Below, piece after piece: positions 6,301-61,700 of a DNA stretch of 64,000 nucleotides. The notes under the pieces are model-generated. The model was not told the DNA's origin. It ran no database searches and saw nothing but the letters and a program-made list of their open reading frames with translations. Each line of letters opens with the position of its first letter. The stretch's first letter is position 1. The stretch is from Bugula neritina. Lineage: Eukaryota; Animalia; Bryozoa. The DNA lies in contig OZ037769.1 of NCBI GenBank assembly GCA_964035545.1, positions 6,119,929 through 6,183,928 of the forward strand, given 5' to 3'. Both the position numbers and the translations under genes were made by a program.

Positions 6301-9175
6301 GCTAAGATGTACAATAATCTTTTAATGTTGTATAACTGAAGTATGCTAGGGATTCTTTACATTGTTTTAATTAGATCTTCAAAGCCACAAAGTAGACCTG
6401 CATTCTAATTTAAGCAGTCTCACCAGCATCATGTCTTTGGATCTTTGTGTAGATGGAGTATAGATATCTGTGTAGATAGAGTATAGATATCTGTGTAGAG
6501 AGAGTATAGATATTTGTGTAGAGAGAGTATAGATATATGTGTAGATAGAATATAGATATCTGTGTAGATAGAGTATAGATATCTGTGTAGGTAGAGTATA
6601 GATATTTGTGTAGATAGAGTATAAATATCTGTGTAGATAGAGTATAGATATCTGTGTAGATAGAGTATAGATATCTGTGTAGATAGAGTATAGATATCTG
6701 TGTAGATAGAGTATAGATATCTGTGTAGGTAGAGTATAGATATCTGTGTAGATAGAGTATAGATATCTGTGTAGATAGAGTATAGATAACTGTGTAGATA
6801 GAGTATAGATATCTGTGTAGGTAGAGTATAGATATCTGTGTAGATAGAGTATAGATATCTGTGTAGGTAGAGTATAGATATCTGTGTAGATAGAGTATAG
6901 ATATCTGTGTAGGTAGAGTATAGATATCTGTGTAGATAGAGTATAGATATCTGTGTAGATAGAGTATAGATATCTGTGTAGATAGAGTATAGATATCTGT
7001 GTAGATAGAGTATAGATATCTGTGTAGATAGAGTATAGATATCTGTGTAGATAGAGTATAGATATATGTGTAGATAGAGTATAGATATCTGTGTAGGTAG
7101 AGTATAGATATCTGTGTAGATAGAGTATAGATATCTGTGTAGGTAGAGTATAGATGGGAAGACTTACGAAGGTGTTTCGTAGCCTTAGACCCTCACAAAA
7201 CAGGCTGCGTGTCTGATAGGGAGTTCTATGACGTGGTGAATGAAGTCTGTGTGCACCTCAGTCTGTATGACCTTGAGCAAGCTATGAAAAGACATGCAGC
7301 AACTGATTCCAGGTGAGTCATGTTTTATAGCATCACTATTATCTTGTTAATATCTTTGTTAATATCATCGATTTTTCACCATTTCTTTGGCCTATAATAG
7401 CTACATTCATGCCTACAGGCAAATTTTATCCAATGAAAGCCCTTCCCTACTAATCTTGCCGCCTATAGTTTTCAAAAAAAATTAAGTTATGTTTTTAATG
7501 CTTGTGTCCTTTTTTCCTACCTCCACTATAACTTTAGCATTAAAATTGAGTTTATAATAAAATATTGTTCACGGAAATGACCTATCTAATCTAAACTATG
7601 TGAGATGACAAATGAAACCCTCCAAAAGCGTTTTACAACAGACAATACAATTAGGCAATAGTGATTATGGTGATATATGGGTTATGGAATTACTTTTGTA
7701 AATACAATACAGAGCAGCCATTTAGCATGTGTAACATGGTACATGTTGTGCTAGGCTGGTCGGTAACAACCTCAGCGAGATGATTGGTTATGCTAGGGAG
7801 AGTATAAGGTGCAATTGAAATGTGTCACATTGAAATAAGCTCTTAATGTATTTCTTGAGCACAATTTGAGACAAAATCATTTAATTAATATTTGCTATTG
7901 GTATCAAAACAATCACATCTGGGTATATGTTACATTTGGCTTACTCATAAATAATGCCAACACATGAAAGTGTTTTTCTAAACTGCAATGAGAGTTTAGT
8001 GTCAAAATCTCTCTTCTGTATTTTTCAGAGTAAACTATGTGAGTTTCCTGACTGAGTTTGGCCCCAAGAAGGAGGTCTGGCACACTGGTAATGACATGTT
8101 CAGCCTACTTACCCATCCCAGGACCCCTCTAGGTATTGGGGACGTGGTAGAACCACCGCAGAGAGGCCTGATTGGAATTTCAGCTAAACTCAGAAATACG
8201 GTATGCACGTACAAGTCGAACACTAGCAGTTCATTATTGGTAATTGAGTATTTTGTACATTTTCACTTGCTGGACATGTGTAACACCAACATTTACTAAA
8301 ATGACAGTGTTTCATGTATTATATAATCATAACATTATATAATTGGCAGCATTATCACTATTATGGATAATTTATTATTTTTCAGTTGTCTGGTAGTTGG
8401 AAGAACCTGAGAAGAGCCTTCCAAAAGTTAGATAAGAATGGGTCAGGGTTCTTACCCCTCCCACATTTCAGAAGTGTTCTGCAGTTGGCTAATGTAGTGC
8501 TTGATGAAGATGAGGTAAAATATTCTACAGATTAAAAGTAAAAAGTATAACTAAATACATTTAAATGATTATACTGCTGATTAATATACTATCTATCTGG
8601 TTACTAATATTATATTTAGAGTATTAGAAAACACAATAGTTTACAAGCTGTTACCAATGTGTTAAATATCAGTCATTCTTACAAGTAGCTTACTTTTAGT
8701 CCTCACTTACGCTGATGCATTGTGGGAAGTTTTTACTGCAAATAACATTAATTCTAAATAACCAAAACGTTCATCATTACTGAATCTCTTCACATACCTG
8801 TTGTTCCAAAAATTACTAGTTCAACTTGTACAATGTGTTTCTAATAATGGCAGAACTCCTTTTAATAAAATGCTCTTCTAGAATATAAATTGAAGACTAT
8901 ACAGAATTTTTGTAGTGACTCGTTGTGTTACTAGCTACTAGATGTTGTAGTTATCTCCTCTTCTCATTACTCAGGTTTACCACGTGATGTCACAGCTAGA
9001 TCAAGACCTTACTGGCCGACTAGACTATAACAAGTTTCTTGGTGAGCTGTTTCGGCCGGAAAGTCAGCGATCTTCTACAAGACAGTCAGGATTACTGCCT
9101 CTCAGTAGACAATCGGCCAGACTATCTGCCAAAGTAGAGAACAAGGCGTCCCGTACTAGAGTCTCCATAGCCTAA
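359..9175 (+). CDS. EFCAB6: EF-hand calcium-binding domain-containing protein 6-like, 17 exons, ~935 aa
   Basis: GT-AG exons with consistent phases: 359-566, 817-972, 1328-1514, 1751-1879, 2144-2275, 2404-2542, 2929-3031, 3290-3426, 3611-3733, 3964-4145, 4374-4550, 5190-5411, 5748-5988, 7143-7312, 8029-8200, 8386-8514, 8975-9175; total 2808 nt, open to TAA. Many EF-hand-like loops (DNDAQGHGTI, DEHRQGFIKPDQF, DPHKTGCVSDREF, DKNGSGFLPLPHF, DQDLTGRLDYNKF). Family call is from recognition; it may be an EFCAB6-like paralogue. Confidence 0.85.
4545..4662 (+). repeat. Degenerate ~35-bp tandem duplication spanning the exon 11 donor site
   Basis: taccag|gtaat at 4550 recurs as ccaggtaat at ~4583 and ~4620 and as taccaggcaat at ~4657. 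Confidence 0.7.
6445..7155 (+). repeat. 23-bp minisatellite (~31 copies) whose last unit is the exon 14 acceptor and first codons
   Basis: Unit atctgtgtag(a/g)tagagtatagat; the last copy reads tgtgtag|GTA GAG TAT AGA TGG (VEYRW). Confidence 0.95.
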
Positions 9176-9891: not shown

Positions 9892-12800
9892 CTACTCCCA
9901 GCTTTCCCAGTCATCGTCAAGATTTATATCTTCCTACAAATTGATAGAAAATAATAATTGATTTAGTAACAAAAAGTATTATAACATATACAATGATATT
10001 CAAAGCCTTATCAATATTAAAAATATAATGGTATACACTATACAGAGTTTTCAACAGTTTTAAATAATATACACATAGCTATAATTTTAGTCTCGCGTGT
10101 GAAATACCTAAATAAGGTCAGCTATTTCCGCACACATAAAAGACAACTAACAGTAAACTAATAAAACGAGGGCCTCGCATTCCCTCATTATGGAAATTCC
10201 CAATGACTCTTATTAATGGCTGGGCATACTGCTTACTGATATAATGTGCCTGAGAAAATAACTTCTAAAAATGATGTTTTAGTTACCAGTTTATGCCAGC
10301 AATTTTTTTCGATCCCCCAATACTTAAAATGTTAAGTGGCTGACACTAAACTAAAGACACTTCTCCTTTGTTTGAAATCAAAGCCTCTTACTTGCTGTCT
10401 TAGAACATCATTCACATGAACATGTGTGCCACAATCGATACACACAGTGGATACACACAGTGGATACACACAGTAGATACATAGAATAGATGCATAGAAT
10501 AGACACATAGAATAGATACATAGAATAGACACATAGAATAGATACATAGAATAGATACATAGAATAGATACATAGAATAGATACATAGAATAGATGCATA
10601 GAATAGACACATAGAATAGATACATAGAATAGACACATAGAATAGATACATAGAATAGACACATAGAATAGATACATAGAATAGATACATAGAATAGATG
10701 CATAGAATAGACACATAGAATAGATACATAGAATAGACACATAGAATAGATACATAGAATAGATACATAGAATAGATACATAGAATAGATACATAGAATA
10801 GATGCATAGAATAGACACATAGAATAGATACATAGAATAGACACATAGAATAGATACATAGAATAGACACATAGAATAGATACATAGAATAGATACATAG
10901 AATAGATGCATAGAATAGACACATAGAATAGATACATAGAATAGATACATAGAATAGATACATAGAATAGATACATAGAATAGATACATAGAATAGATAC
11001 ATAGAATAGATGCGTAGAACAGATACATAGAATAGATACATAGAATAGATGCATAGAATAGATGCATAGAATAGATACTTAGAATAGATGCATAGAATAG
11101 ATACATAAAATAGATACATAAAATAGATACATAGAATAGATACATAGAATAGCTCACCTTCCCAGCACTGATCTGCTCAGCCAGCTCTTGGACAGCCTTC
11201 AAATCTTCCCCAAACAAGTCTTTATCCCAGTCATCATCCAGACCACTTGACTCTGTAACAGTACACCTAGTCATACAATGTGTCCTTACTAGTAACTAGT
11301 ACACCTAGTCATACAATGTTCCCTTACTAGTAACTAGTACACCTAGTCATACAATGTGCCCTTACTAGTAACTAGTACACCTAGTCATACAATGTTCCCT
11401 TATTAGTAACTAATACACCTAGTCATACAATGTGCTCTTACTAGTAACTAATACACAGTCATACAATGTTCCCTTATTAGTAACTAATACACCTAGTCAT
11501 ACAATGTGCTCTTACTAGTAACAGTACACCTAGTCATACAATGTTCCCTTACTAATAATTAGCAGTGAGTACTACACTCTAACTGTGTGCTCAACCCACT
11601 GCATGCTTTGCATCTACAAGTGTATATAAAACACAGCAGAGCAGCAGCAAATATATTCATAACAAGTAGGAAGGAGAGCAGTTGAAACTTAAATTTGTTT
11701 TCCCTCGTCACCCACGCTGTGTAACATCAGCATCAGTCAAATAGATTTACAAGATATTCCGTTGAAGTCATATAAAATTAGCAACAAATAAAGATGCTGA
11801 AGTCCACATCCCCCTCTCTACGGAGTAACCCGCCCCCCTCCTCTCCGCTCCCCCCCCCAGAAAGTAAGTAACTTACTTGTTGAGCCAACAGAGCTGGCAG
11901 GAGTTGGTCTGTCAGATCCAACCATCAGGAAATCTCCTTTCTCTTTCACCGCCACTTTCTTCCCTCCCTCATCAATTGAAACAAGATCCACTTTATCCGC
12001 CGAGTCTGTCAAAGTGTCAGACTTGGCTTTTTCTTGTGCTGTGAGATTTCTCACCTCTCCGTGTTCCTTCTTTGAGTTGCTAGTCACTACTTCTGTCTCA
12101 GGTGTTGTTACAGAATCTGCAAGAAAAAACTAGTAGCCATTAAACCATGAAACGTCCTGCAACACCAAACCATACTTTATAAAGAGTTGTGTGTGTATAG
12201 TGATTTTAAACCTGTATAGCACATAAGATATAATGATATATACACTACAAAATAGAACATAGTCGTATACTACATTAATACACTACTGATTATATTATCA
12301 GTAATAACATATTGAATAGCACTTAGTATACAAAAAACATGCATACTTTGAGGTGAAGGCTGAACATCTGATTGGTTCCTTAATTCCAAATCTTCTTCTG
12401 TCGCATGTTTGGGAGTTGTCTCCACAGCACTTGCAACAGGAGTTGTCTCCACAGCACTTGTGGCAGGAGTTGTCTCCACAGCACTTGTGACAGGAGTTGT
12501 CTTCACAGCACTTGTGGCAGGAGTTGTCTCCACAGCACTTGCGACAGGAGTTGTCTTCACAGCACTTGTGGCCGGAGTTGTCTCCACAGCACTTGCAACA
12601 GGAGTTGTCTTGACAGCACTTGTGGCAGGAGTTGTCTTGACAGCACTTGTGGTAGGAGTTGTCTCCACATCACTTGTGGCCGGAGTTGCCTCCACAGATT
12701 GAGTTTTACTGTCAGATGGAAGAGAGTCAGCTACTACAGGTGCAGACGGATCAACAAGTACAGACGTTGGAATGTTCACAGACGGTGTCCCCTGATGAGT

Positions 12801-19593: not shown

Positions 19594-22500
19594 ATGGGAC
19601 CTTACTCATCTGGCTCTGGTGCCTGCAACAGTATTAATGGTAGCAATTCTGGTAAATCAGCCAGTAATAGTAAGTTAACTCATTTAGAATAAATTCACTT
19701 TTATTTTGCATAAATTAATGTAATACATATATGTTATATATACATACAGATATGCAATTTTTCATCGATTAGTAAATTATACATTTGATTTTTACACCAG
19801 TAAATTCAATGAGCATATACTATGATTTTAATACACTAAGCACACATATTATTATATAATATTGTCTTATTTATTGTACATAAAATGGCTTGTAGCGTTT
19901 TGAAAGCACAGTTGATTATAGCCCATAGGCTGTTATTAACTGATTGATATAAGTTAGTATAGCAGACAGAATAAAAAATTGTATTATAATGTTTTAATAT
20001 ATTATTTCAAATTATAAGGTTTTATTATGGTTAATTATATACATAGCATACCATGTTATTAACTGAAGCTGAACATTTTGTACCTAATTTTATGAAATAG
20101 TAAACTTTGTACAAGAATATATTATCCCCTGTTAAATTTTCATTCTCTTTTTCATTCAAAGGTATTGGTTTTTGTTTATATACTCAATAGAGGCTTTTCA
20201 CAAGCCCTCTGGGGACATTTGTATTTTGAAGTTGTCTCCTCCCAGAAGGGCGAAGTGTAGTCTCCATGATATATAGAACAAGCACATAAAATCAGTAGAA
20301 ATTTAAGGTTTGTGGGAAGACTATTGCTAGTACAAGTTTCATTTTTTCTGAGATTAATATTTTGGCATAAGCACACAGGTTAGCAGTTCCAGAAAAATTT
20401 TAAAAATTTTCTTTCTTCAACAATCTTGAGAAAAATTAACTTCAAAGCATGTTTGTGGTTTTGGTTACTGCACGAGCAAGCTGAATTGGCAACTATGAGA
20501 TAAGTCCCATTAATCAGTTGTTATGCTGGCTGTCATATTCAATTTATAGCTGTTGACCTTTCAACTCTTTGGTCGGAATGTGCTGTTAACACAGTGTTAG
20601 ACCACTGCTACTCTGCTAGTGCACTGAATAAGACAGCAGATTAGCTGTGTTAGCATTTTCATTACACTTACGCACTTATGCTATGATAATAGCTAGACTA
20701 TAACCTCAACATCCATCATTTTCACAAAAAGCATTTTCACAAAGCTATAGATATATATTAAATAGACAGATTAAATTTGTAGTATCAAAATGATGCGTGA
20801 TAGCATGTGCACTTAATTACACTTTGAAGAGTTTGTGCTACATTATGTTCAAAGGACCGAAAATGCTTTACATAGTTTCATGTTATGGCTAAAACTTCTT
20901 TAAAAGAAAAATATTACCAAGAAAAGCAAAGCTCAGTTTATGCAAAAATTTATTAAAAACACTTTATATTTAGGCAGGCATCTTTTCATTCAGTATCGAT
21001 CCATCTTGAAATATTTTGTCTACCCTATATCTTCATTGCATATTTTACAACAGGTCTAATAGTTTTATTTAAAAGATTTAATTGAAATGTTATACTTGAT
21101 TTTAACTTACATATCCTCGCGCATGCCTATTTTAAGATAATAGCTGTAATATTCTAATTGGTGCTGTCGTGACTTATAGCCAACCTCTAAACTTTTATGT
21201 CATTCAAATATGAGTCTCAAATTTAAGAAAGGCTTTATATTTTATAACATTTTGTGACCTATGGGATCAGCCAAGCTAGTTGTATAATTGCAGTTGAGTG
21301 TCAATAACACTAGCTCATGATATTTGAAGCATGAGAAGTTGAGGAGCTATAACATTAAACAGTCTAACTGAAAATCCAAGCAAAATGTTAATAACCCAAT
21401 TTTATCAACATGCTTTCACTGCTTCACTTGTAAGAATCTGCTTAATAGGCTACTTTTCAACCAGAATTTCCTTCTAAAGTAATTTTCAGAGAATTCAGTT
21501 TATGCTGCAATTTGATGAGTTGGGAAACTTGGGTTTTCAGGTGCAGTAGTGATTAGATTAGTTTACCTATTTTATATTGTATATCCATTTTATTATATAA
21601 CTATACTTTAACCTACCATACATTAACTAGGATCTTGAATCTACCGCAGTTGACGGCGATGACTACTACACACAAGGTAGATGCAGTACTAATGGAGAAA
21701 TTGGGAAAAGCCTTTTTTCTAGATTAGAAATGTAGCAAAAAAGTTGTGTTATACGCAACACCAACATTTGTAAAGAAAGTTAAAGAACTTAGGCTATCTC
21801 AATTTCTTCACTACTGCATGCTCCTAAATGCTACAAGCCACAGGCATAATTAAGAAATAACAAAGCTGTAACACAAGGGCCCGAATGCCAACTGCTAAAA
21901 GACTATCTCGGTTTTTGATTAAATTATCTAGATATATATTTATTTGAGCACAATTGTTACAATTGCCATAGATGCATTTAAGCTGTATTAGATAATTAAC
22001 CGACATGTGTCAAAGCACATTTCATATTCGTTCTATACTACAAATTTAATCTGTCTATTTAATATATATCTATAGCTTTGTGAAAATGCTTTTTGTGAAA
22101 ATGATGGATGTTGAGGTTATAGTCTAGCTATTATCATAGCATAAGTGCGTAAGTGTAATGAAAATGCTAACACAGCTAATCTGCTGTCTTATTCAGTGCA
22201 CTAGCAGAGTAGCAGTGGTCTAACACTGTGTCAACAGCACATTCCGACCAAAGAGTTGAAAGGTCAACAGCTATAAATTGAATATGACAGCCAGCATAAC
22301 AACTGATTAATGGGACTTATCTCATAGTTGCCAATTCAGCTTGCTCGCGCAGTAACCAAAACCACAAACATGCTTTGAAGTTAATTTTTCTCAAGATTGT
22401 TGAAGAAAGAAAATTTTTAAATTTTTTCTGGAACTGCTAACCTGTGTGCTTATGCCAAAATATTAATCTCAGAAAAAATGAAACTTGTACTAGCAATAGT

Positions 22501-24124
22501 CTTCCCACAAACCTTAAATTTCTACTGATTTTATGTGCTTGTTCTATATATCATGGAGACTACACTTCGCCCTTCTGGGAGGAGACAACTTCAAAATACA
22601 AATGTCCCCAGAGGGCTTGTGAAAAGCCTCTATTGGTAGATTTATTACTAGCATATATAAAAATACAGACATTTACGTTGTAGAGACAATATAGTTTATA
22701 TCAATGGCACTTTGATGCAACTAAAATTTGTGTACATTTATAAATGTAAACCCTATATATCTTATCATTTCAAATATGAACAACACAGCCACGACTGCTA
22801 TCTATATAATTATTTCAATATATTATATTACTTTTAAGCTAGAAACATTTCTGCATACTAATCCTATTGGATGACAGCTAGTGTGTTGCTTAGTAACAAG
22901 TAATTCTTTTCTTCTGAAGGTTATTCGGCCTCAAAATCTCGCTCTGGTAGTGTCAACAGTACCCCCTCATTAAGCTCCCAGGCTAGCTCCTATAAATCTC
23001 TGGCTCACAGGCTAAACAATCACAGAAGTAAGCTGTTTCATCAAGTCTAATATCTCAATTTGCTATTGAAAATTAGTAAAAGAAAATTCAACATTCCAGC
23101 ATAACATTGTTAATGAAAAATATTTCTGGTTAATGCTAATTTATGAGAGTGCGTGTGTGCCCGTGTGTTTATATAAATTAGTATTAACCAGAATTATTTG
23201 TCACCAATAGTTATAATTTACTTCTTATTATAGATTTTTAGAATTTTAATATTTTTATAGTCTATATATTTGAGATTATTTGTAGACCCACAATGCCTGC
23301 CGCCGCATGTTCTATACTACCTCAGCTACAATGAGAACTATTTACCTGCTTACTATAAACTAATGGAGAGGTACATCATGAGTCATTCAATGATGCCTCC
23401 GGAGTGTATAGAGCCATTTCTCTCTCAGCCAGCCGGTGGCCCTCCTCCACCTCCCTCTGTCCGGCCTCCTTCTGGTAAAAGTTCTCGCAGCAGCAGCAGA
23501 CGGAGTAGTTATGTGAGTTTATAGGTTCACCATGCATATGCTGCCTTATACCATATACTCATAGTATGTTTTTCTATCTCATGCTTACTTATACTATATA
23601 CTCATTATATATAGCTATGCATATATGTACTGACTATTATATACTCATGATAATATATAGCCACATATATTACGAGTATAATTATACTGAAATACATGTA
23701 TATATATACTCATATGCTGTAAACAGCAATCATGGCTTCAACCTGAATAGAATAACATTGAATGGTGGATTTCTTTACTACTTTAAGTCAACAAAACATT
23801 ATGTCTTCTTCAACAAAATAAAATATTTATACTTGATCTGAAGATTGTAGAAAACTCACTGTAATAATTGTGCATTATCAGCGAAATGCTAGAACAAAAT
23901 ATTTTGATATATACTTTAATTTTTTACAGTCAACTAAACTAACATTTTCAGTGAGATTTATAGTCAGATGATAGCAAATTAAAATTATAAAATAAAATTA
24001 TATTTATATACTACTGTAAGTCCTCATACACACATGCATACATATATGTAGTTATATTTGAAGGAAGACAACTCTATATAATAGTATAATTGTATTTATT
24101 GTCTTTTTGTTTTAGTCGAGCTGA
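19594..24124 (+). CDS. Orphan small gene A: Ser/Gly-rich, Tyr-rich, Pro/Ser-Arg tail, ~140-150 aa
   Basis: Exons 19594-19669 (MGPYSSGSGACNSINGSNSGKSASN, phase-1 gtaagt), optional 21650-21676 (IDGDDYYTQ), 22920-23027 (YSASKSRSGSVNSTPSLSSQASSYKSLAHRLNNHR), 23286-23512 (NPQCLPPHVLYYLSYNENYLPAYYKLMERY...SRSSSRRSSY). It then either splices via gtgagt to 24116-24124 (SS*) or reads through to the stop at 23524. All phases are compatible. Confidence 0.6.
20185..20785 (+). repeat. Left arm of a 601-bp inverted repeat
   Basis: Reverse complement of 22035-22635 with about 3 mismatches seen; explains the twin ORFs 20176..20376(-) and 22444..22683(+). Confidence 0.95.
22035..22635 (-). repeat. Right arm of the 601-bp inverted repeat
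   Basis: Pairs with 20185-20785 across a 1249-bp spacer. Confidence 0.95.
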
Positions 24125-26341
24125 TTGGCTGATGAATTAAAGCATTATTAGTAAAGATTGGTTCATATACATGGAATGATTATAGCAGGGCTATAAGTAA
24201 TGTACAGGATGTTGTGAACCTGTTTTAATTTTTCTCCAACTGTTTTTATTTTCGTTGAATCTTGTAACAACAAATAAACTATGCAATAAAAGATTAAATA
24301 AAAACCTTTAAAATCTGTTTGTTTCTCTAAGATTTGAAATTGTATTTGTGCAATGCAGAACATATATAAGCTATACATCACACCTTTATGCAACACTTAT
24401 TAGCATCAACAATTTACATTTGTAATTTTACTGGATCTATCCTGTATATACATGCATACAAATGACATTGTTATTTTCATATCTACATGTCACTATATTA
24501 TAGTATTGCTAGCTCTCCTATTTAGTTAGTTTATATTTGTGCTGAGCTGAGGTGGTGTCACTAGAATTTTGAAAATTGGAGTCATTTACTCTCAGGTGAA
24601 TAAATTGCACCACAGGTACTATTACTTTACACCTGCATAATATGATTATATAGCTTAAACTATAGCTTTACAAATTTATTTGTATTAAATGAATAGGTCT
24701 CAATAATTATCCATAACCTTCTTACATAGCTGCAGTTCTCAAAAAGACTGTAATTAAAATATGTAATGCATGTACCAAAAAGGCCTCCCAGCTGATATAA
24801 TTGACAATATGGGACCCAAAGCTACAAGTCACAAACACCTGTTAATCTAATCATAAGCCCTGCATGACTCATATTACCTCATGTAGCTGGAATTACCAGT
24901 CATTTGCCATCTGTTTATTGGAAATATACTAGTTGCAGCTTCCAGCTTAGCTTATGCAATATACAGTGTACACCGGTACAAAATTTATATAACATACCAT
25001 TGCAATGATAATCATTCTACTTGATATACAATGTGCCTATGTTATATACATAATTATTTCTGTTTGCAATTAGGAATTTCAACAGGGCAGTCACATTGTT
25101 TACGCACCGCCATGAAAACATAATTTTCTTGCCACTCACCTCTAAAAGAATTCAAAGTTTATTATCAGCTGGTCTGATTGCAGTATGGAGTAAATCCTCT
25201 CCCATTAAAATATTTTAAAAGATTTTGAAATAATATATTATACAAGCACTATTTAGAAGTCATGTCTTCTCAAAGTTCCAGCTCAGGTTGGTGGTTTTTA
25301 TCTAGTTGTTTTCTTATTGCACATCAACATTGTTACTGTAAATGTAACTTTTACAAAAAATTATTTTTTTTTTATTTTTTCATTACTAGAAATTACTATA
25401 ATTTTCATGTAATTTAATCTGTTTTATCCAGTTTAGCAGGTATTGCAAGATATTAAATCTTTTTTGATTACAACATTTTAGTAAATTGAGTTGGCCTACT
25501 TTCACCTTTTACTTTAATATAAGGTTCATATGCCTAATGACTGTTTTTAACTGTTTGTTGTTGAACTAGCATATAATACAATGTAAATTAGGTAAAACAT
25601 TATCTGAAGTAGTAATTGTTTGATATAAATAAACTATTAACTGTACTCGTCAACTTGCCCTACTAGACTGTTTAAAGACATTTATGCAGTTTTTCACCAT
25701 TTATCCCGTTGAACAAAAATTCATACTCTTGTATGTAGACTTTATATATATTATTATGTGCTCACAATAAGTTGCAAAGAATTTTAATATGTGTTGAAAG
25801 CAATCACATTAGGAACTGCAGCAAGTTAAAACAGCTGCTATTATTAGGTGTACTTAAAGCTGTACCCAGTTATATAATGCATGCAGAAAAAAATTGTTTA
25901 AATTATAATAAAGTTGTATAAACACTAAAGACAATAGTATTATATTCTAGTATTATTATTATTTTAAAATTTGCAAATTACCTACAACATTATTATGAAT
26001 ATCAATATTAATATACTGATAGTAATAGTAAATGTTATAATACTAATACATACTCAAACTTAAAGAATCCTGAACACACATGATTTATGCAGTATTAAAA
26101 TATTCATAATATATCTTAGCTATCATATACAGACTGTTTGAGATTTGTATACTCAAAAAATTTTGGTTTATAATAAAATTCGTTCCAACACATCTTGAAT
26201 TAAATTGGGATTTCTGATTGCTTGCTTATGATGTCCATGGTACAGTAGGATTAATCTAATTATTGCTGACTTTCATTGCATACCTTTCGTTGCTGCTACA
26301 GCACACAACTTGATCACTGAACTGGCCTGAATGTTTAGCTA

Positions 26342-26356
26342 ATATATATATATTCA

Positions 26357-26422
<66 letters not shown>
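26342..26422. repeat. (TA)n microsatellite
   Basis: Long TA run with small interruptions. Confidence 0.95.
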
Positions 26423-26423
<1 letters not shown>

Positions 26424-26520
26424 ATCAATATTTTTATGCTGAATATACATGTTTGTCAGAGATTCTCTAACTACAGTACAAACACAGACACAAGTATACA
26501 GTAGTTTATTGTTCTACCAG

Positions 26521-27165
26521 GTTCTGACTCAGACAGTTATGTGAGTAGAAAGAAAAGCAGCAAGAAAAAAGATGGAAGTGCCTCTGATGGAAATTGCTGT
26601 GGGTGTAAATGTGGGACAGCGTGCGGTATGTATACTTATGTTGGGTAGTGCTATATGGTGTTAACAATGTGCTACAAGATAAGATGTATCCTGGTATAGC
26701 GGAATAGAGGAGTATAATCTATATACCATATAATTAACCCATAATTCATAGCTAAGCTGAACATCTTAACTGGTCTAGATTATGTAAACTTTGAGAACAA
26801 GCACTCTTGGTTGTACCTGGTGCATCTTGTGTTTACCTTTTCCTTCTACATTCGTAATTGAGAATTAAATTACACCAGAAACCAAGTTTTTATATAAATT
26901 CACGTGTTTTAATATATAACAATAATATAGTAATTTCATACCATTATCCCACACAGGGCCTCAGGTGAACTGTGGGTTTGGACCATATGCCTGCTACTAC
27001 AACTACTACCAGTGGTATGCCAACTACCTACGATGCTGCAGCTACTACCCTAGTGCCTACTACAACTGCTATCAGCCTTGTGCACCAGCCTTTAACTGTT
27101 TCAACGGAACCTCCTGTGGCTGCAGCTGCGGAAGTGGCAGTTGCTGCAAATCTAACAAACGCTGA
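26521..27165 (+). CDS. Orphan small gene B: Cys/Tyr-rich protein, 5' start exon not located
   Basis: Exon 26521-26625 (SDSDSYVSRKKSSKKKDGSASDGNCCGCKCGTAC, phase 1 at both ends) joins exon 26957-27165 (PQVNCGFGPYACYYNYYQWYANYLRCCSYY...SCGCSCGSGSCCKSNKR*). 17 Cys in ~104 aa. AATAAA at 27219-27224. Confidence 0.7.
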
Positions 27166-27817
27166 TAGTCTGTTTGGATATCGAGGCTAAAATCTGCAAA
27201 TAATTTTATTTTGATAGCAATAAAAAAGTTCTGTTTTTGAAAATAATTATATTGCAGCCTTTTAGTTTCTACAATACTCAAAATGCAGCCATTTAAAGTA
27301 GTAATATTTTCTTATTTATTTGTTGAATGAGCATCGCTTCAAAGATCATAATTGGGGAAAATCAAAATTTAAATAAATTGCATTGAAGATGCTGTAGAAA
27401 AAGAAACATTCAACAAACTCAAACTGCAAAAGTTTTGACGGCTTCATGACTCATTTCACAATAGAAGGGCATTTCATCAAGTGCAAGCTGAATCATGAGC
27501 TATTCCTGTTATAGCAACATTATATAATAATATTATATATAATAATAACATAGTATATATAATGCAACATGGAAGTTAGTCTATAGCATACAGCTGTGTA
27601 AACATCAAACTAAGACTTTATCTATACCAAGAATTTTCATTGTTTACATAAAGTTAAGACAATTTATTACTATTAATTTATTTAAGTTTATTTCCATGAG
27701 CAGGATTCGTGTGAGAATAGACTTATTGTGATAAACTTGACCTATCATATTCCAATATAATAAGAGGTGAAAAGTCATATGTAACCAGTCTTATAACAAC
27801 TAACATCAACATCAATT

Positions 27818-29002
27818 ATGCCTTCTGCATCTCAGTATGGGACATCAGCAGGGAGTGGGTCAGAGTATTCAGGCACCTACAGCGGCAGTGGTAGTAGCAG
27901 TGGATATGCATCATGGTCAGGAAATTCTTACCCTATCCGTATGTATGCTGAGCTGTTTCAACTTTAGCTGGCATAATTTGTAGCTTATGTGAAAGATGCC
28001 TAGGGCAGACGTAAAAATATGAGTGCAGGATTTCAGTTTTTTACCAGCAGCACTATATAGCTGTAGTAGAATTTGTAACATCAAAAAATTGACTGATTAT
28101 AAAATAAAACAACAACGGTCCAATTAAACAAACCGCAAATTATAAAACAGAGCTAAGTAACTTTATTATTGGATTTTACCTGCTGACAGCCTGTTTATAC
28201 TAACCAAATTTAATTAACAACACATTTAAATTACACCATGCTATTGTAATGGCTGTAGGAAGTGTTGCTTCCCAACCACGAGGTATACAGACACTCTTCT
28301 TATAAGAAGCGTAACTATATTATATTTTCAAGGTGTGATAACTCTCTGTGATACGCTCAGGCTAACATTTCAAAATGCCGCACTTCTGCGGCATAGATAC
28401 GCGGTATCGCATCAATCGCTGCAGTCCCCACTACCTGAACCCCACCGGCCAATCAAATGACACTTAATAGAATAAACATTAATTTTAAAACAATTATTTA
28501 AAAAATTTAAATAAAGTAGTAATTATAATAAACTATAATAAATATGATATTTTGGTAACAACAGCTGTTACAAACATTTTGAAGATAACAGTTGTTACCA
28601 ATGAGATTTAAAAAGTCATTTCAACTCTTTTTTTAATATACTTTGAAATCAAAATTGTTTATTGCAGAACGTTTTAATTGTGAATATTTTCATTTTTAAT
28701 TTAACTTTATGTTTTCATAACAAAATGTGATTGACATATTTCAGTATTAGCCTAGATTCTAGAATATCACACTGTTGGGAATTGCACTCGAATTCTTTGA
28801 TTTTGATTGGTCTGATTTTCCATTACCAGGTTATGCGAGGAGCAGTCCATCAAATGCATATCCTATTAGACGGTGCGTCACACCATACATGATGTACCTT
28901 CAAACCTACTACAACACAATGAGGAGTTTTTCCCCCCACGGCTCAGCTAGCTATGCCCCATGTGCTTACGAATGCATGTACACTCCTCCACCAAGACTGT
29001 GA
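27818..29002 (+). CDS. Orphan small gene C: Ser/Gly/Tyr-rich protein, 97 aa, 2 exons
   Basis: Exon 27818-27938 (MPSASQYGTSAGSGSEYSGTYSGSGSSSGYASWSGNSYPI, phase-1 gtatgt) plus 28830-29002 (RYARSSPSNAYPIRRCVTPYMMYLQTYYNTMRSF...ECMYTPPPRL*); 294 nt. AATAAA at 29096-29101. Confidence 0.75.
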
Positions 29003-29171
29003 ACATCTTCAGAATCTAACACTGACCGACACTCAGTTACATCTGCTATTCATACTGCTTGTGTTGATGAATCATGGTCAATCAAAGTTGCAAATAATAA
29101 AAACTACGCTACTATTTGAATGCAAGAAGCATTTTATTATTATTAATGTTATTATAGTCACTGTGTGTAGG

Positions 29172-29226
29172 TGTGTGCGTGCGTGCGTGCGTGCGTGCGT
29201 GTATGCGTGCGTGCGTGCGTACGTGT
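29172..29226. repeat. (GCGT)n microsatellite
   Basis: gtgcgtgcgtgcgt run downstream of gene C. Confidence 0.9.
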
Positions 29227-29595
29227 AGGATGTCCTGTTTGTTCTAAAGAAATTAAAAGAAATTCCCGAATATATAAAATATGTTGACTTGGTATTTGAA
29301 ATATCTTAAAAATGGTTAATTAGCAGCAACAAGCTTCGAGGCTATTGGTCAACTCATTACACCATAATTCTCATTGGTCAACATGATAAGCAGCATTCCA
29401 GAATATTCTAGTAATAGTCAGGAGGTCAGCAGGGCTGAACTGACAAACTCTCAAGTTTTCTGTTCAGTGAACATATAAATACTTTAAACTACATGCATGC
29501 ATGTGTAGGCAGCAAGCTACAACTCTCAGAAAATACCTATAAGATTGTTACAGAGTCAACTTGGTTATCATAATAAATTCGCTCCAAACTAAACT

Positions 29596-30917
29596 ATGTC
29601 TGACAGCACAAATGCTGACAGTGGCAGCAGCAGCAGCAGTAGCAGTTACAGCAGCTACAGCAGCTATAGTTCTGGTAAAAAACCTCTTCAAACAAATGGT
29701 ATGTAATGAGATAGAACAGTAACTGGTGGTAAATCATTGTTATAGTCTGTGACATAATATTTTATATACTATACGTCTATATTGTGTGCTATATATAAGG
29801 GTAATGTGTAAATAATATGTTTAAATTAATCAAGAATAATAAACAACTATGTTTCATCCCTTTGAAACAACACGCAACCAAAATGGTGGACTTGCTACTA
29901 TATCACTTTGGCAAACAAATTCAAACTTCATAAAAATGCCTAAATATACTCAAGTTGTATAAAATGTATTGCAATCTATTGCAAGGCTGTATGAAACGTT
30001 TCATTATAATTAGGTCAAATTTAAAATGCATTATATGGATTTTAATATAATATGAGTAAATCTAAACTTTTCTGTCACATAAAATAAAGCGAGTTAAAGA
30101 TTTGTAAATTGACAACTTTATGAGCGCAAACAATACCTTGTATTATCATAGTTTTACAAAAATGTAGCAGGTAATAATTGAATCGGAGAATCTTGGTTGT
30201 AGATAATAACGAATCTTCTAGAAGAAGACGTGAGCCACCAATAGACCCGTGGACTGCGTACTATGCTGCATATTATCAGTATTACAACTCCTACTACACT
30301 GCCCAACTGATATCCCAGGGTGCCTTAGCACATCGCCCAATGGGTTGCTGTCATGACAAGTCGCGTTGTTGTGGTAACAAAGAGCAAACAAAAGGCAGTA
30401 AGTAAATAGCAATAGAAGGTATAAAAGGTCTGGTGCTTAAAAGTCTCCCACCATACAGCAGCACATGTATGTCATAGACAACTTGAAACTTCTAGTTCTA
30501 TACATTATATAAATATTTCATAAAACATTAGACAAAAAGATTATACGAGTACATTATGCAAGCTTAAATAAGGGCTAGGATACCTTTTTGGGGTATTTTG
30601 TCTTGCTATGTTGTATTCATAATATATTTTTAGAATTTACATGAATTTCATATTAGGTAAAATTAGTATTAAGTTTCCACAGTACACAATAATGCTAAGT
30701 TGCAGGAGAGGTCCATGTTCTTAAACCAGGAATTTGTTAAAACTTTACACTTGATGCCATGGTAATGTAATTAGTATTCTGCTGGAATGTTCTAGATGGA
30801 CATGACGCTACTTCCTGTGGGAAATCTACTTGTGTTCAGGGTCAAGGTCAGCCTGGTTGGGCAGGCGGTGCTTGTTTTCCTGGCTGGACAAGCATGACAG
30901 GTGCCCCACCATTCTGA
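29596..30917 (+). CDS. Orphan small gene D: poly-Ser, Tyr-rich, Cys-containing protein, 139 aa, 3 exons
   Basis: Exons 29596-29698 (MSDSTNADSGSSSSSSSYSSYSSYSSGKKPLQTN), 30203-30397 (DNNESSRRRREPPIDPWTAYYAAYYQYYNSYYTAQL...GCCHDKSRCCGNK) and 30796-30917 (NGHDATSCGKSTCVQGQGQPGWAGGACFPGWTSMTGAPPF*). Both introns are phase 1; total 420 nt. An unspliced alternative stops at 30405. Confidence 0.75.
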
Positions 30918-31749: not shown

Positions 31750-34700
31750 TCACATGACTACCTCCGGTACAGGGTATGATTCGTCATGTAGAAAGTACTT
31801 AGGTGAAGTCTTCAATGTAATCAGAATAGGTTCTTGTTGATAATGATCATACTTGTCGATGGGGCTAGGAAACGGGTTCATATACACCCGACTTACAGGC
31901 TGCTTAATGAAAGGAACAAAGCCATACAACTGGCCGGGTGGGAGCGCCCACTCCCCGTGCCCATTTTTGTGATACTTTCGTAGATCTGTGGTAACAAGAG
32001 CAGTCTCTCTGTCCGGTTTACAACTATTGGCACCAGTATGCAGCTCCCCCAGTCTCACAAGGGCCGGTTTACTGTTCAAAGAGAAAATAAAAAGTCTTAG
32101 AAATTCTAACTCAATAAGCTTCCGGAATTTTAAACATTTTTAAAACACTAAGAACCTAATACATTGGATTTTCCCAAACAGATATTCTGCTAAGTAAGCA
32201 TACAAATGAAACTTGTCCATATACAGTACTATTGTACTCAAGTTAATACAGTTTGTATTACAGCTACTTGTGTTACAGCCACTTGTAAATTACACCGGCC
32301 ATATTAACATCCTACTAGTTGCCTCGAGAAGAAATCTAAAAAATTCAGGTAGTAAATTAACTAAACTATAATTTGAAGAAATATTGAAGAGACCGCTGAG
32401 GACTTGACCTTCACCTACAGTGAATATGTAAGTCTATTATGTACTTACACTCGCAGTTTGGGCAACACTAGCACTGTGTTCTTAGTTTCTACCAGTTTGT
32501 CATCAGCTTGTTGGACGGCTTTGGCCTTGTTTAGTTCATTACTTATTTCCATTTCACAGAAATAGTTGATACACTCTATCCATGTTGCCTTATCTATCAC
32601 ACTACTACTGGGGGGCTCGTTGAACGTCACTGTAACCATAGATAAAGAATTATATGAACCCAGACTAAAATTATACGAATCAAGCCTGATGAGCTACACC
32701 ACCAACCAATTCATTAGTACGGAGTAGTAGACAATATTTAAATAATGGAGTTTTTTCACTAGTTATTGAGAGTTGTCTTTTTGAAAAACAAAGCCAAAAA
32801 ATTGTAGTACAACTAAATTTCAAAATAAAGTCGCATTTATTGAAAAAGAAATTTAGGCAATTTTTTAACATAATTAAAAACTAAATAATTATATGGAAGA
32901 ATTTTAAAGTTAATTCTACAAGTTTTAGGTAACAATATCGAAATTTTTACAATGTGAGAGAAGCACAGAATAATAAAATGTTCCAGTTTCCTCAACTTTG
33001 TGCATACATTCTAGTATTTTGACAACATTGTCAGTTAAAACTGCATTTAGCTTGCCATTCAAATAGAAATAGCTTTAAAATTTAATAAAAGATGTCTACT
33101 AATTAAACTACAACTGAAATTTAGAATTTAAAATTGACATTTAAAAATGATAATTATTTTAACAGTTGGTATCTAACATTTTATATCAGCCTCATTATTA
33201 GTATCCTTTAAAGTTAGAGTATTATTACTAAATACTATGGAACTTACATAAGAGAAAACAACTCTCAATATTTACTCACTGCTTACTAATGAGCAGACAA
33301 CTACCTGTATACGCTTTCTTGTCTGCCAGTTTCTTAGCTTGACCTCTTCCAACTCTTGAGTGCACAGCCTGACCTCTTTTCAACATCTCTATACCTTCCT
33401 TAAGATGTGCTTGAAACCTGGTCATCCATCTAAAAAGGTGAAAACTCACTGCAAGGTGAACTTGACATACACCGCCCATGTTTACCAAGTATATCTGTAG
33501 CACTTTGGTAATAGTATTTATTCAGTAACAGCTGCGGAGCTTAGAGGAATATAACTATTGCAAATATTATCAAACCAAAAGAAAAACTTTTTAACTTTAA
33601 TATCATACAACTTCTAAAGTATTCTATTAATTTTGTTTATCCCTGAGCTGTTAGACTAAAGCTGGGGCCACATGGAGGCCATAACTCCCACAGTTAATTA
33701 TCAATTGTATTCAGTGATAAATTACTATGGGAGTTACCTGCTCCACACACTAAGTGGCTAGCTTGAGAAAAACTCAGTGACGAATCATATTTCTCCATGG
33801 CTTTACTGCCCATGACATAAACTACTGAATTTTGAAGTCTCGCACTCAACTATTCTCAATAATGAGCAATTGATTGGAATAAAAATGTAAAACTGAAACT
33901 ATTAGCCAATGAGATCACTAACAAAAGAGCTTTTTGCAATAATCGTTCAGCATTTTGACGACATAAAATCCGCTCAAAACAGCCCTTTTTGCAGTATGTA
34001 CAAAGTTTTCACTGGCGGTCCTTTCAGAAATCCTCTTCATGTAGCCCTAGCTTAAATCTTAAAAATAAAATTATGCTAATAATCTTTTAATAGTAAACCA
34101 TTACTTTCATAAAAGCGAAATTGATACTCACTTTTCAAGCCATGAGTCACAGATCTCTGATATTTTGTATTTCCTGTCAACACCCTCGAAGGCCCAAGTG
34201 TCCCAGGAGTCCATTTCCTTAGTAAAGAAGTGATGTCGGTCATTGAGACCACACTGATTGAACATGTCTATGACGTAGAGTCGTAACTCCTGATCTCCGT
34301 CAATAAACTGATTCATTAGCTCAATGTAGAACTTCTTAGAAGAACACTAAAACATGTCAGAAATAGTAAATTTAACGTAACTTTGAGTGAAAATAAACTA
34401 GATTGTATAAAAACTATATTTAGTCTAAAAATAAATGTCAACCTAATGAAACGTATGTTTTGAAAGACTCAAAACCACACAAAACTAGTTGTTTCAGTGC
34501 AGCTATATATTACCATTAACCAAAACAGCTTTAGAGATCTCATTAACATAATAAGATGAGCATTCTCAAACTGTTAGTAAATATAACATTTTTAATTACA
34601 AGTATTTGAACGGATTTTCTTGAAATTTTCTCACCAGATTGTTTGCAAAAAGCTTTGAATAGCATGGTTTGCTATAAATTAAAAACACGCCCATGCATTA

Positions 34701-40700: not shown

Positions 40701-43700
40701 AACTCAACAAGGTCACTATAGTAACACGTCTTTCAAACATGACAGTGTGAGTGGACGTAGACAAATGAGGAAATACAACTAAATGGTGGAAAGAAAATCT
40801 GTGCTAAAAAGACACAATCAGTCTGTTAAGAGGTGTTAGATTTTACAGACTGTGTTATAGCAGTTCACACTGTGCTACAGCTAGTCCAGTGCACGTTGAC
40901 ACTCTAAAACGTGAGTATTACATGAAACCAAACAAGTTCACCTGCTGTTGAAATGCTGCCAATGCCTTCTCCTCAGCCAAGTCAGCGACTGACTTGGGAC
41001 CCTAATTCAAGAAATTATGAGCATAAATGCCATGTAATTGGTACCTCAAAGGTAAAATAACTCCAACAAACCATCTATTATGTCATGTAAAGTTTGTGTT
41101 GAATATAGAGAAAAGCTCAGTTTTAAAATGAAGAGCATGTAGAAAGAGTAACGGATATTTATGAAAGAAATTATCTGAATTGATTCAATATGATGAGTGC
41201 TACATCAACAATATAAATCCACGCAGAGAATAATAAAATAATATGTGTATACTGAAGTTATAATTTTAACATCAACTTATAAACTTTGTGAAAGCAGGTG
41301 AGATACACTCTATCAGAGAAAGCTATACCAGAATTGGTTTCATCAATAATTTATCCTTCCAATTACGTACAAATCGTTTAACTCGTTCCCGTTTAGCCTA
41401 AACACAGGAAATACAAACAAAGGTCAAGGAGAGCCAGTTAATAATGATACAGGCGATCAGCAAATTGTCAGCTAGAGATACATTTTATCACAACACAACG
41501 ATTGTCAGAGCAAGGAAAGAAAGGGAACCAAACTCCTGCAATGGAAAGGTAATGGAGATAATGGGGGGATAATGGATATACAGACAGACAGACATGTTAG
41601 ATAACCAGACAGGAAGTCACGTCCTGACCGTGTACAATCCTCCGTAGTTTTGCTGACGTCGTTTCCTTTTAGGCCTACTTAGTAGACCAAATCCCACCTC
41701 ATCAAGAGATGTTAGTCTCGGGTGTAACTCAGTTCCCTTTTAATGACAGCATAACGAGTAGAAGCAGACGTCTGGCATCAATGTGACTCATGCTATGATA
41801 TGAAAACACACACTAGGAGTAATAACTTACTCTAGTCTGACCGATTTCTGCCAGCTGCTCATCGGTAAGTCGGGGCGGTCTCCAAGTGTCCTCAACTGCA
41901 CTTGTTTTAGCATCCTCGGGAAACAGCAGACGTACAAGTACAGAATTAGGCAGGAAACCTCTGGGGTCTGACGGGTAAACCAGCCGCTCATTGCCTGCGA
42001 GTCAACAAAATGAAACAAAATATTTCCAACTAGTTACCCTACACCAGCCTCCTAACAAGTTACCCTACACCAGCCTCCTAACTAGTTACCCTACACCAGC
42101 CTCCTAACTAGTTACCCTACACCAGCCTCCTAACTAGTTACCCTACACCAGCCTCCTAACTAGTTACCCTACACCAGCCCCCTAACTAGTTACCCTACAC
42201 CAGCCCTCTAACTAGTTACCCGACACCAGCCCCCCAACTAGTTACCCTACACCAGCCCCCTAACTAGTTACCCTACACCAGCCCCCTAACTAGTTACCCT
42301 ACACCAGCCCCCTAACTAGTTACCCTACACCAGCCCCCTGACTAGTTACCTTACACCAGCCCCCTAACTAGTTACCCTACACCAGCCCCCTAACTAGTTA
42401 CCCTACACCAGCCCCCTGACTAGTTACCTTACACCAGCCCCCTAACTAGTTACCCTACACCAGCCCCCTAACTAGTTACCCTACACCAGCCTCCTAACTA
42501 GTTACCCTACACCAGCCCCCTAACTAGTTACCCTACACCAGCCCTCTAACTAGTTACCCTACACCAGCCCCCTAACTAGTTACCCTACACCAGCCCCCTA
42601 ACTAGTTACCCTACACCAGCCCCCTAACTAGTTACCCTACACCAGCCTCCTAACTAGTTACCCTACACCAGCCCTCTAACTAGTTACCCTACACCAGCCC
42701 CCTAACTAGTTACCCTACACCAGCCCCCTAACTAGTTACCCTACACCAGCCCCCTAACTAGTTACCCTACACCAGCCCCCTAACTAGTTACCCTACACCA
42801 GCCTCCTAACTAGTTACCCTACACCAGCCCCCTAACTAGTTACCCTACACCAGCCTCCTAACTAGTTACCCTACACCAGCCCCTTAACTAGTTACCCGAC
42901 ACCAGCCCTCTAACTAGTTACCCTACACCAGCCCCCCAACTAGACTGATGACGTCATGATGCGCAGCTGACTGGCACAAAGTTTACTCTCTCAGTCTGAT
43001 GGGACATCAGAAATTTAATCACACATAGCATTTAACTGAATTCCATACTCTATTCTCTACTCCATATTCTATTATTATTCATTATATAATATACTCTATT
43101 ATATACTCCCTTCTATACTATATTATACTTCATTATATACTATATTCTATGCTATATACTCTTACTGAACTTGTTACTGACTGACATTGATCATAATTTG
43201 CTACTAGGCAAATCTACTCACTGTTGACTAAAGTAGAATAACTCAAGTTAGACAGCACATGTGACTAGATAAATATATCATCATGTCATTATTTCTCATA
43301 ATATACATTTTAGTATAGAAGTTATTAAAATCATGGTCATAAAATATGACAACTTGAAAACAGTCTTACAACTACCACATCCCTCCAACTCATATATACC
43401 ATATAATGTGATTGCTGTAATAGCGGTACCTGTCTCAAGTAAGTTTTTATCTTCTTCTATGTTATATCCAGTAGATTTGAGTAAATCACAAACTGGCACT
43501 GTGCCAGCTTTTTCTGCCGAAGGAAAGAATCCCTGATCTTCGTACTTCTGATACTCAGTCTCCACATCATCGTTCTTTTTAATGGCTGCCTTTGCCGAGT
43601 CAACAGGAAACTCATCTTCTCTGTACAACTGCAATACACATAAAATGATGACTTTATACAACTGCAGCACACAAAAAAAATAAATACAATTTTTTTAATT

Positions 43701-58700: not shown

Positions 58701-61700
58701 TTCCGCCGTGTCCGTACGGACAGACGACGGCGCGTTCCACCATACTCCTTTAGTTGCGGCCCGCGGGGAGGGAGTGTGTCCGCGGGCCGTGACAGTTTAA
58801 CGCCCCCTGGTATTGGGGTCGTCCTTTCTGTCCCTGGTCCTGATCGGCGCTACTCCAGCCCTGCCCCACAGATGTTGGGGGCATCCGCAAGGCCTGACCG
58901 GGGCCAGCACCGGCCAGAATGGTTACCAATTGTCCCAGCATCTCTACCATGCGGTCCACTTCGGCTTCCAGCGGGAGGGCTTCGGAGCCTGTCGTAGCCC
59001 TGGCAGCGCTGACTCCAACCACTGGGGGGTTCCTTTGTGCTCGATGCATTTGGGTAGCCAACAGGTAAGCTTCTCCAGCCTTCAGGGCATCCTCTATTCT
59101 GGTTATCCCTTTAGCTCGTAGGTGATGGTCTAGGCCCAGGTCGTTTAGGGACTGGACAAAGGCGTCATAGGTGTAACGCTCCTGGTGTTGTGCTGGCAGA
59201 TCGCTATATGCAATCTGCGCCAGCTTCTTCACCGTCGCGGCATGTTCTTGCAGCGAGGTCCGCGGGGTGCGGCACAATCTCTCCAGCTTGGTCCTAGCGT
59301 CTATGACGGAGGTGCCAAAACGGGCCCGCAGCGCAGCCAGTATGCCGTCTACGTTCGTTCCCACTCCGTACGGCTTGGCTTGCTCCGTCACCGCCCTCCG
59401 CAATTGGATAAGGGCCACTCTATGCGGCCATTGAGCAACTTCCATTACCTCTCTAAATTCTTGTATAAATTGTTCGACATCTTCCGACCCAGTAAAGGTG
59501 GGAGCTTTCAAGCAATGTCTATAAGCTTCTTCTCCTTCACGATTCACAGGATTAACAGCATTTCTACGCTCACCTTCTACTGGGGGTGGTTGCATTCTAG
59601 CATTTTCAGTCTCCATCTTTGATATACACTATCCCACCGCTGCCACCACTGTTATAGTTTTCAGATTTAGGGTTGATGTGCCACCAAGAGAGTCTATTTC
59701 ACACTAGAGAAACTTCACCAGTTAAGTCGAGTAGATATCGTTATATTTAATACAAGAATACATAATAAAAATCCAATGTACAACAGTAATGATACGCACG
59801 TCTATTTAGTTTACAGCACTATCCTCGACTGAGCTAGTAGCGCGAAGCGGCTACTATTACTTATCAAACAGCTTAGCTAATTGGCTAATACAGTGTTCCG
59901 GGTCAATACGCAACCTTGCGTATTGTGTTGCTGGTAGCTCCACGAGCCACCACAATATGAGGATGCAAGAAAAAATTATTAATTATGTGTATAACTTACA
60001 GCAACACTTTAATAAATGCGACTACAGTAAACAATGATTGCACAGATAAAATCAATATTTAAAATATTATCAGAGATTTTTTATATGCACTCAAACAACT
60101 ATCATTACTGATCAACTTTTGTGTAATTTTTATTTTTTCATAAAAAAATATTATTCAATTGATGAAAATCATTATATTACTAACTACAACTAGATTTTCT
60201 ACACATTCTAGAAATATTACCTAATATTTTATATACTTAACATTGCCTACAAACACGTGTATCAGTGCAACACTGAGTGTTAAAAATAAAAATCAATCTC
60301 AGCATCCATAAACTTTTACTTGAACATTAAAAATATTTTTAACTAGGTCTTACTTATCAACTTGATCCAAAACTTCTAAATTCCAAACTCTCATAGTTTG
60401 ATCGGAGCTGAGAGAAAGGAACTGTGGACCCCAGGGATAATTAGCGAGTCCAGTTACACTCTTTGTATGACCCACAAATACAAACTGCAATTTCCAATCA
60501 CTGGACCAGACTTTGACTAAAACCATTAAAGTAAATTAATAACTAATAATCAACAGTTTACAGTGTAGTTAACGCGCTAAAATGCTGATATATTTGTTAG
60601 AGAACACAAGTTGAATAGTGGGTGAGACAAGTTCGTAGTATATAACATTTAGTATCATAACGAATATAGCTGGTACATGCTATGCTGTATTACATGGCTG
60701 GTAAAGTCGCATGTAGTAAATGTTAGGCTATGTGATGCACTGAATAGCCCGGCAGCAACTTACTCGATCCGTCATAGGCAGCAGATATCAAATACTTGAG
60801 AGGATTGAAGAACAACAAAGCTGTAATGTCTCTTTGATGTAGATTCTTTCTCCAACACACAAACTGCATGTCACTCACACTAAATACCTGCATGAATCAA
60901 CAACACAAACTTATTACAAAGAATGATAATATTTAATAAAACAAACTACAACAGTTTAAGAAAAAAAACTGTATAAAACAGTGAATGTGGGAAATTATTG
61001 AATTTAACTATTTCTCTACAGGTTCTTTTTCTCTTTTTCAATTACATTCGCTAAGTTTTTTAATATTCTAGAAATTATACAAAAAGTGATTAGCCAGCTC
61101 TTATTATATTACAAAGAAGGTAAAATACTACAACATGCCATTGATAAAAGTGTTTAAAACATCTTTAGGTGACTTGGAGTTACAAATAAAAAATTAGAGA
61201 AGAAACTAATAGATAATTTATTATGTCCATCCTAAGTAATAGAATGGACAAATTAATCATGTTAATAAACTAAATTCTATGTTTTACAAAGGTATTACGT
61301 TTTACTTACTGCTAAACAGGCATCAAATGCCACATAACACTTTTGAGTTCTGCTCGGGGTGTCTTCTAGGGCCAATAGATGCAGCTCTCTCCCTTCCAGA
61401 ATCTCATGTTCCATACGAGTGTGTCTCGCTATGAGATGACGATTCCCAAACCGGAACACATAACACTATTGAGTATATAGAATAAAGTGTATACATTATC
61501 ATGAAGAGATTATTACACTATTATATATTGCCCAATATACTGGAAAAACATTTTGACCTGCAAAATTATAAAAAAAGTATTCACTCAGATTTTTATTGAG
61601 TGGAAAAGTGCTAATTACTAGCTATTATTTTAAAAAACGGTGCAATTGTGTTAATTTACCAAATTTGTTCCAATTTAAGTTTTTGAGATGTTTTTTAGCA

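Follow-up and report, generated by a model that had tools for sequence, protein, structure and literature searches.

A cluster of four small, undescribed Cys/Tyr-rich genes with conserved cores in the bryozoan Bugula neritina

In Drosophila, the genes Mst84Da-d form a four-gene cluster encoding Cys-Gly-Pro proteins that are expressed in spermatocytes, and their loss disturbs axoneme assembly (PMC10645079). This cluster is the closest working analogue for four small, spliced and co-oriented genes, here called A, B, C and D, which occupy positions 19594-30917 on the plus strand of a 64,000-nucleotide stretch of Bugula neritina DNA (the window; contig OZ037769.1, contig 5 in an animal genome of 216 Mb). 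What they have in common with the Mst(3)CGP family (Mst84Da-d and Mst87F) is the clustering of four small genes, the absence of secretion and the Cys/Gly/Pro-rich tails of B and of the D orthologues. They differ in that they have no repetitive Cys-Gly-Pro array, in a Ser-rich, basic N-terminal part and a conserved Tyr helix, and no sequence homology was found. The proteins carry 0-1 Cys-Gly-Pro and 0-8 Cys-x-Pro units each (4-8 Cys-x-Pro and one Cys-Gly-Pro in the tails of the D orthologues), and since the repeated Cys-Gly-Pro that defines the family (PMC10645079) is missing, membership in it was ruled out.

Other described families come less close. The keratin-associated proteins (KRTAPs, of the high Gly-Tyr and high-sulfur types) and the epidermal differentiation complex are likewise small, intracellular, clustered and rich in Ser, Gly, Tyr, Cys and Pro, but A-D have no pentapeptide Cys repeats, are encoded by multiple exons and have single-copy orthologues with helical cores, and they were not assigned to the KRTAPs because no keratin-associated Pfam model matched. 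The tail-anchored CYSTM proteins share a low-complexity N-terminus, a basic patch and Cys clusters; A-D differ from them in lacking a Pfam match and a hydrophobic C-terminal segment, A and C have no Cys clusters, and with a best 11-residue hydropathy of only 0.5-0.8 over the whole window proteins the Cys-rich hydrophobic module of CYSTM is absent. A similar short Tyr-periodic helix within disordered protein (W-x-x-Y-Y, Y-x-x-x-Y) is that of the SMN YG box and of the tyrosine motifs of FUBP1 and KHSRP, from which A-D are set apart by having no glycine zipper, no Tudor or KH domains, no Pfam match and, for A and D, no PDB match. Two further candidates were rejected, i.e., protamine-like sperm nuclear basic proteins (Lys plus Arg is 6-13%, with no Pfam match) and secreted Tyr-rich adhesive or cuticle proteins of the dihydroxyphenylalanine (DOPA) type (all eight complete models lack a signal peptide). 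None of the exons scanned matched a Pfam family at E values up to 1, Foldseek produced no match for A or D, the Atlas held no look-alike by features and by shape only generic two-helix matches (template-modelling score ≤0.62), and the core peptides occurred in no paper found. The cluster is undescribed, and the first-pass annotation of the window was right to regard it as old and its proteins as non-secreted; orthologues in other species show that it is also conserved.

The four genes are real. As had been proposed from the start, they are multi-exon genes that translate cleanly, and all seven of their coding introns are GT-AG and of phase 1; the five splice junctions predicted at the outset (27938/28830, 29698/30203, 30397/30796, 26625/26957 and 23027/23286) are all correct in the models. 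The coding exons have a G+C content of 48-49%, against 29.9% in the non-coding DNA of the cluster; the remaining G+C islands of the cluster coincide with a transposon, with a simple repeat or with two short segments in which no gene-like frame is seen. The start codon of each gene is preceded by an in-frame stop at a distance of 2-14 codons. The AATAAA signals that had been noted downstream of A-C are a weak argument, since this hexamer occurs 26 times within 12.5 kb in the cluster region. Searches of the genome itself showed each gene to be single-copy, and the weak matches that came up there were traced to satellite DNA, noise or an exon of an ABC transporter. One satellite (G000:C8:814804-826850, L009-L011; L-numbers label the contigs compared and P-numbers the protein matches) can be read in long open frames rich in Tyr, Cys and Val and yields false matches to Tyr-rich profiles.

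Gene A (140 residues, three exons) begins with a Ser/Gly/Asn-rich exon at 19594-19669 bearing the ATG and a phase-1 donor, modelled from the sequence with its upstream in-frame stop (the contig retrieved does not include the orthologous exon), and continues with a Ser-rich exon with a basic patch, of phase 1 at both ends (22920-23027, with a matching phase-1/1 exon at L025:524-607), and with an exon that encodes a conserved Tyr core of two predicted helices, a Pro/Ser/Arg tail and the stop (23286-23524). A strong, seemingly unused phase-0 donor follows position 23512, just before this stop, and a strong acceptor lies about 600 nucleotides on, at 24116; gene A may thus have an alternative C-terminus, in which a candidate last mini-exon at 24116-24124 would add two Ser and a stop. 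Three AATAAA stand 3' of this mini-exon, at 24273-24297. For gene B (112 residues, three exons), the predicted first exon is a Ser-rich stretch of 25 nucleotides at 25262-25286, with an ATG and a phase-1 donor; exon 2, with a Ser/Asp stretch, a Lys patch and a Cys cluster, is at 26521-26625 (phase 1/1, in layout and donor position as in L025:2880-3143), and exon 3, with the Tyr core YYQWYA-YLRCC and a Cys-rich tail, is at 26957-27165. Gene C (97 residues) has two exons, a Ser/Gly/Tyr-rich one with a phase-1 donor (27818-27938, a sequence model) and one with the Tyr core PY--YL-TYYN--RS and a Pro/Cys tail (28830-29002). Gene D (139 residues) has three, i.e., a Ser/Tyr-rich exon with a phase-1 donor (29596-29698), an exon with a nearly invariant Tyr-faced helix of 28 residues, its core starting at 30244, and a Cys/Lys tail (30203-30397), and an exon with a Cys/Gly/Pro tail and the stop (30796-30917), a layout that matches that of three orthologues.

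Orthologues were sought with a profile built from the four core exons and run against 1.8 billion representatives, with a word search using D exon 2, and with a pattern scan built on the A/C alignment. The profile found one genuine relative (P0002) among these representatives, a bacterial-type repeat protein (P0001) was rejected as a composition artefact, and the word search matched three clusters, whose contigs came from marine metagenomes. One of them, L021, carries the label BRYA16, which we read as Bryant et al. 2016, a study in which bryozoans accounted for 30-90% of eukaryotic ribosomal RNA reads on plastic debris (PMC5069773). The source of L020 and L024 is the marine biofilm BioSample of PMC6355793. 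By DNA identity the contigs fall into three lineages (L019; L021, L022 and L033; L020, L023 and L024), and each contains a D orthologue of 177-202 residues with three exons and two phase-1 introns. Taken together, the metagenomic contigs supply orthologues of all four genes, from at least three lineages besides that of the window. In L022, the D orthologue is followed by the exon that also lies downstream of D in the window, the last exon of a convergent minus-strand neighbour (31750-32064; putatively WDR97, a label that comes from the first-pass annotation), which serves as a marker of synteny with 88 of its 104 residues identical. In view of the type of sample and the high identity of this exon, the hosts of the metagenomic contigs would be bryozoans.

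The order of the genes also recurs. A C orthologue lies directly upstream of D in L023 and L024, where it is absent from the called genes, an illustration of how genes of this cluster escaped the gene callers on metagenome contigs; it is apparently intronless there (L023:665-976), unlike C of the window. The A/C pattern scan led to L025, which has an A orthologue and, 1.2 kb farther on, a B orthologue, with exon phases as in the window. The adjacencies A-B, C-D and D-neighbour are thus each kept in other contigs, and B-C is spanned by no single contig. At L025:2827-2880, before the B orthologue, a short Met-started stretch stops at a GC dinucleotide 26 nucleotides before the phase-1 acceptor, and an in-frame Met is found also four codons before that acceptor. 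Word searches with B exon 3 and with the A/C alignment, and a scan of the JGI collection with D, gave no match. The cluster is probably an ancient one restricted to cheilostome bryozoans, although its absence outside Bryozoa is not firmly shown, since the D word search covered proteins of 35-112 residues, so that full-length relatives of 139-200 residues from other phyla fell outside it, and the search free of length limits used a weak four-sequence profile with which a true orthologue scored only 43 bits. The D core exon could serve as a bryozoan marker in metagenomes of fouling communities and plastic debris.

Strong purifying selection acts on the cores of A, B and D, as judged by the proportions of non-synonymous (pN) and synonymous (pS) differences. 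In the A core, 31 of 39 residues are identical to those of L025 (pN 0.15 versus pS 0.73; Fisher p 1e-8), and in the B core 11 of 12 (pN 0.07 versus pS 0.98, over a short stretch picked because it matched). The D core has 26-27 of 28 residues identical across six contigs (pN 0.02-0.03 versus pS 0.52-0.81), and between the window and L022 it is more conserved than the neighbour exon (pN 0.03 versus 0.10). In the C core the signal of selection was not significant (pN 0.35 versus pS 0.65, p 0.1). The phase-1, Cys/Pro-rich exon 3 of the D orthologues is itself under purifying selection (pN 0.06 versus pS 0.67, L019 versus L022); over a wider span of species the N- and C-terminal parts keep their composition and not their sequence. 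That orthologues retain frames, splice phases and core residues is more than chance would give, and the genes encode functional proteins in which the core is fixed and the tails drift, rather than the fast-diverging orphans that had been supposed. Frames conserved in other lineages and the want of a match to any known family were two of the points on which the first-pass annotation had staked its case, and both went in its favor. An orphan helix of 28 residues that is more conserved than an ordinary neighbouring gene suggests an essential interaction without a known counterpart.

The four proteins share a layout of a Ser/Gly-rich basic N-terminal part, a Tyr core and a variable Cys/Pro/Gly tail that is Cys-rich mostly in B and D. 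The core motifs and basic patches quoted in the first-pass annotation are all present, the patch of C being only IRR, and its statement that A, C and D have no hydrophobic signal peptide was borne out and can be extended, with the predicted exon 1, to B, whose start it had left open. The best 11-residue Kyte-Doolittle mean within the first 35 residues is ≤0.4, i.e., there is no hydrophobic N-terminus, the eight complete models without a signal peptide come from four lineages, a signal peptide being absent from all nine proteins whose start was examined, and no hydrophobic segment is found in the window proteins at any point. With shallow alignments, AlphaFold2 predicted two helices in the A core (residues 6-14 and 18-33) and, in D exon 2, a single helix at residues 15-37 (predicted local distance difference test score 70-83) with disordered flanks. 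With a turn of 100 degrees per residue, the predicted D helix has all nine of its aromatic residues, one Trp and eight Tyr, inside an arc of 160 degrees (p 0.001 versus shuffles), and its opposite face consists of Ala, Ser, Thr, Asn and Gln. A, B and C have the same one-face aromatic tendency, weakly (p 0.04-0.12). Invariance extends to the Asp-Pro-Trp that precedes the D helix and to most of the residues that follow it, a pattern that favours a packed interface over tyrosines as mere substrates for cross-linking; the dityrosine linkage suggested at first is the less likely reason for the tyrosines, because non-Tyr positions within the D helix do not vary either. In one D orthologue, exon 3 (L023:2823-2992) contains a Cys-x3-Cys run that matched nothing in a Pfam scan and that we take to recall the Cys-rich domains of cnidarian minicollagens.

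Whether A-D constitute one paralogue family, as was first claimed, was addressed by comparing core similarity with that of shuffles in which orthologue columns were shuffled jointly. The claim stood for A and C (p 0.001; hhalign E 5e-4) and was marginal for the remaining pairs (about 0.016 for A-D, B-D and C-D, 0.04 for B-C and 0.10 for A-B), for which hhalign was also weaker. Based on these similarities and the shared layout and phases, a common origin of A and C is likely, and one of all four genes is plausible. The competing view, that A-D are unrelated or only partly related low-complexity neighbours, is compatible with any function and has some claim to be right, although we regard it as the less credible one: it can point to A-C being the only pair at p=0.001, to hhalign probabilities of 0.6-31% and to orthologue profiles that fail to recover the remaining genes of the cluster from the genome, but against it stand a common strand, a common order of modules, seven phase-1 introns, a Pro-capped Tyr helix right behind a phase-1 acceptor in each gene, and the hexapeptide TYYNTM, which is common to the A orthologue and C.

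As a well-supported group of orphan genes, the cluster appears to encode small intracellular Cys/Tyr-rich proteins, and our tentative proposal for their function, short of an even chance of being correct, is that they are cytoplasmic structural proteins, cross-linked by disulfides in an accessory fibre of the sperm tail or cilium and working in the manner of Mst84D. The Tyr-faced helix would dock the proteins onto one another or onto a conserved partner, and the Cys-rich tails, mainly those of B and D, would then lock the assembly through disulfides, while the N-terminal part, disordered and probably phosphorylated, would tune solubility or bind an acidic polymer, e.g., tubulin. The helices in this scheme are predicted, and the assembly, cross-linking and sperm setting are inferred only, the last by analogy with Drosophila. 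We counted in favor of the setting the presence in the window of EFCAB6, a protein known from the doublet structures of cilia and sperm. Several points weigh against the proposal, i.e., a promoter scan upstream of the genes found no X-box and no shared motif other than AT-rich ones, the best PDB match by sequence to the D profile was an antibody (E 0.19) and no axonemal chain matched, and the direct upstream neighbour is a BSD-domain gene, which is not ciliary. In addition, A and C have only three Cys each, so that cross-linking suits B and D far better, and sperm accessory proteins usually evolve fast, whereas the core of D hardly varies. A more specific and quite speculative version would have the tyrosine face act as a code for hetero-oligomerisation among four paralogues, locked by disulfides into a bryozoan-specific intracellular fibre (e.g., a rod in the sperm midpiece or an accessory structure of cilia), an independent invention resembling outer dense fibres. 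Bryozoan-specific genes are almost unstudied, and A-D are four concrete candidates for a lineage-specific cell structure.

The same composition, the tandem clustering, the lack of a signal peptide, and Lys patches and Cys clusters that are possible sites of cross-linking would also suit somatic structural proteins of the keratin-associated or cornified-envelope kind, in epidermis, the lining of the pharynx or gizzard, tentacles or larval cells. Such families are repetitive, expanded and fast-changing, however, and with A-D being single-copy, with a fixed helical core and no keratin-associated Pfam match, we consider a somatic role unlikely. Doubtful as well, and more so, is that the proteins are S-acylated adaptors, tethered to the inner leaflet by basic patch and Cys clusters with the aromatic face on membrane or partner, as in CYSTM. 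B and its orthologue both retain CC clusters behind a basic patch, CC forms the C-terminus of two D orthologues and the helix is amphipathic, but A and C have no CC pairs, D of the window and D of L023 lack the C-terminal CC, and the hydrophobic segment and Pfam match expected of CYSTM are lacking.

A location in the nucleus or in granules, whether as protamine-like sperm chromatin proteins or as scaffolds of condensates oligomerising through a Tyr helix like that of the SMN YG box, is improbable: the D orthologues do have Ser-Lys runs at their N-termini, the net charge is +3 to +11 and there are a few [GS]Y[GS] motifs, but protamine-like proteins have Lys and Arg far above the content of these proteins, no winged-helix or YG-box Pfam model matched, and the D helix contains no glycines. 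Export without a signal peptide, as proteins of cuticle or glue with DOPA or dityrosine cross-links, would make use of the 8-14% Tyr of the window proteins and is very improbable, given eight models in four lineages with no signal for secretion and invariant non-Tyr residues that suggest a fold rather than a mere substrate.

Around the cluster, the neighbours named in the first-pass annotation were confirmed where they could be matched: the BSD-domain gene directly upstream is on the minus strand (Pfam BSD, E 3e-8), and the EFCAB6 gene, farther upstream, matched the PDB chain of that name at E 5e-21. Within the cluster, intron 1 of gene A contains a 2.45-kb non-autonomous element (20185-22635) with perfect terminal inverted repeats of 601 nucleotides; full-length copies of it, more than 20 in number and 94-99% identical, occur across the genome. 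It has no stop-free frame above 63 residues and its insertion sites are AT-rich; it is a young DNA element, a passenger in the intron that stands outside the protein system. Elsewhere in the window, a Gypsy-type long terminal repeat retrotransposon occupies 53078-59616, its gag, pol and integrase frames being in minus orientation, and introns contain long and highly regular minisatellites at 6446-7155 (23-nucleotide unit), 10463-11152 (13-nucleotide unit) and 42028-42943 (26-nucleotide unit).

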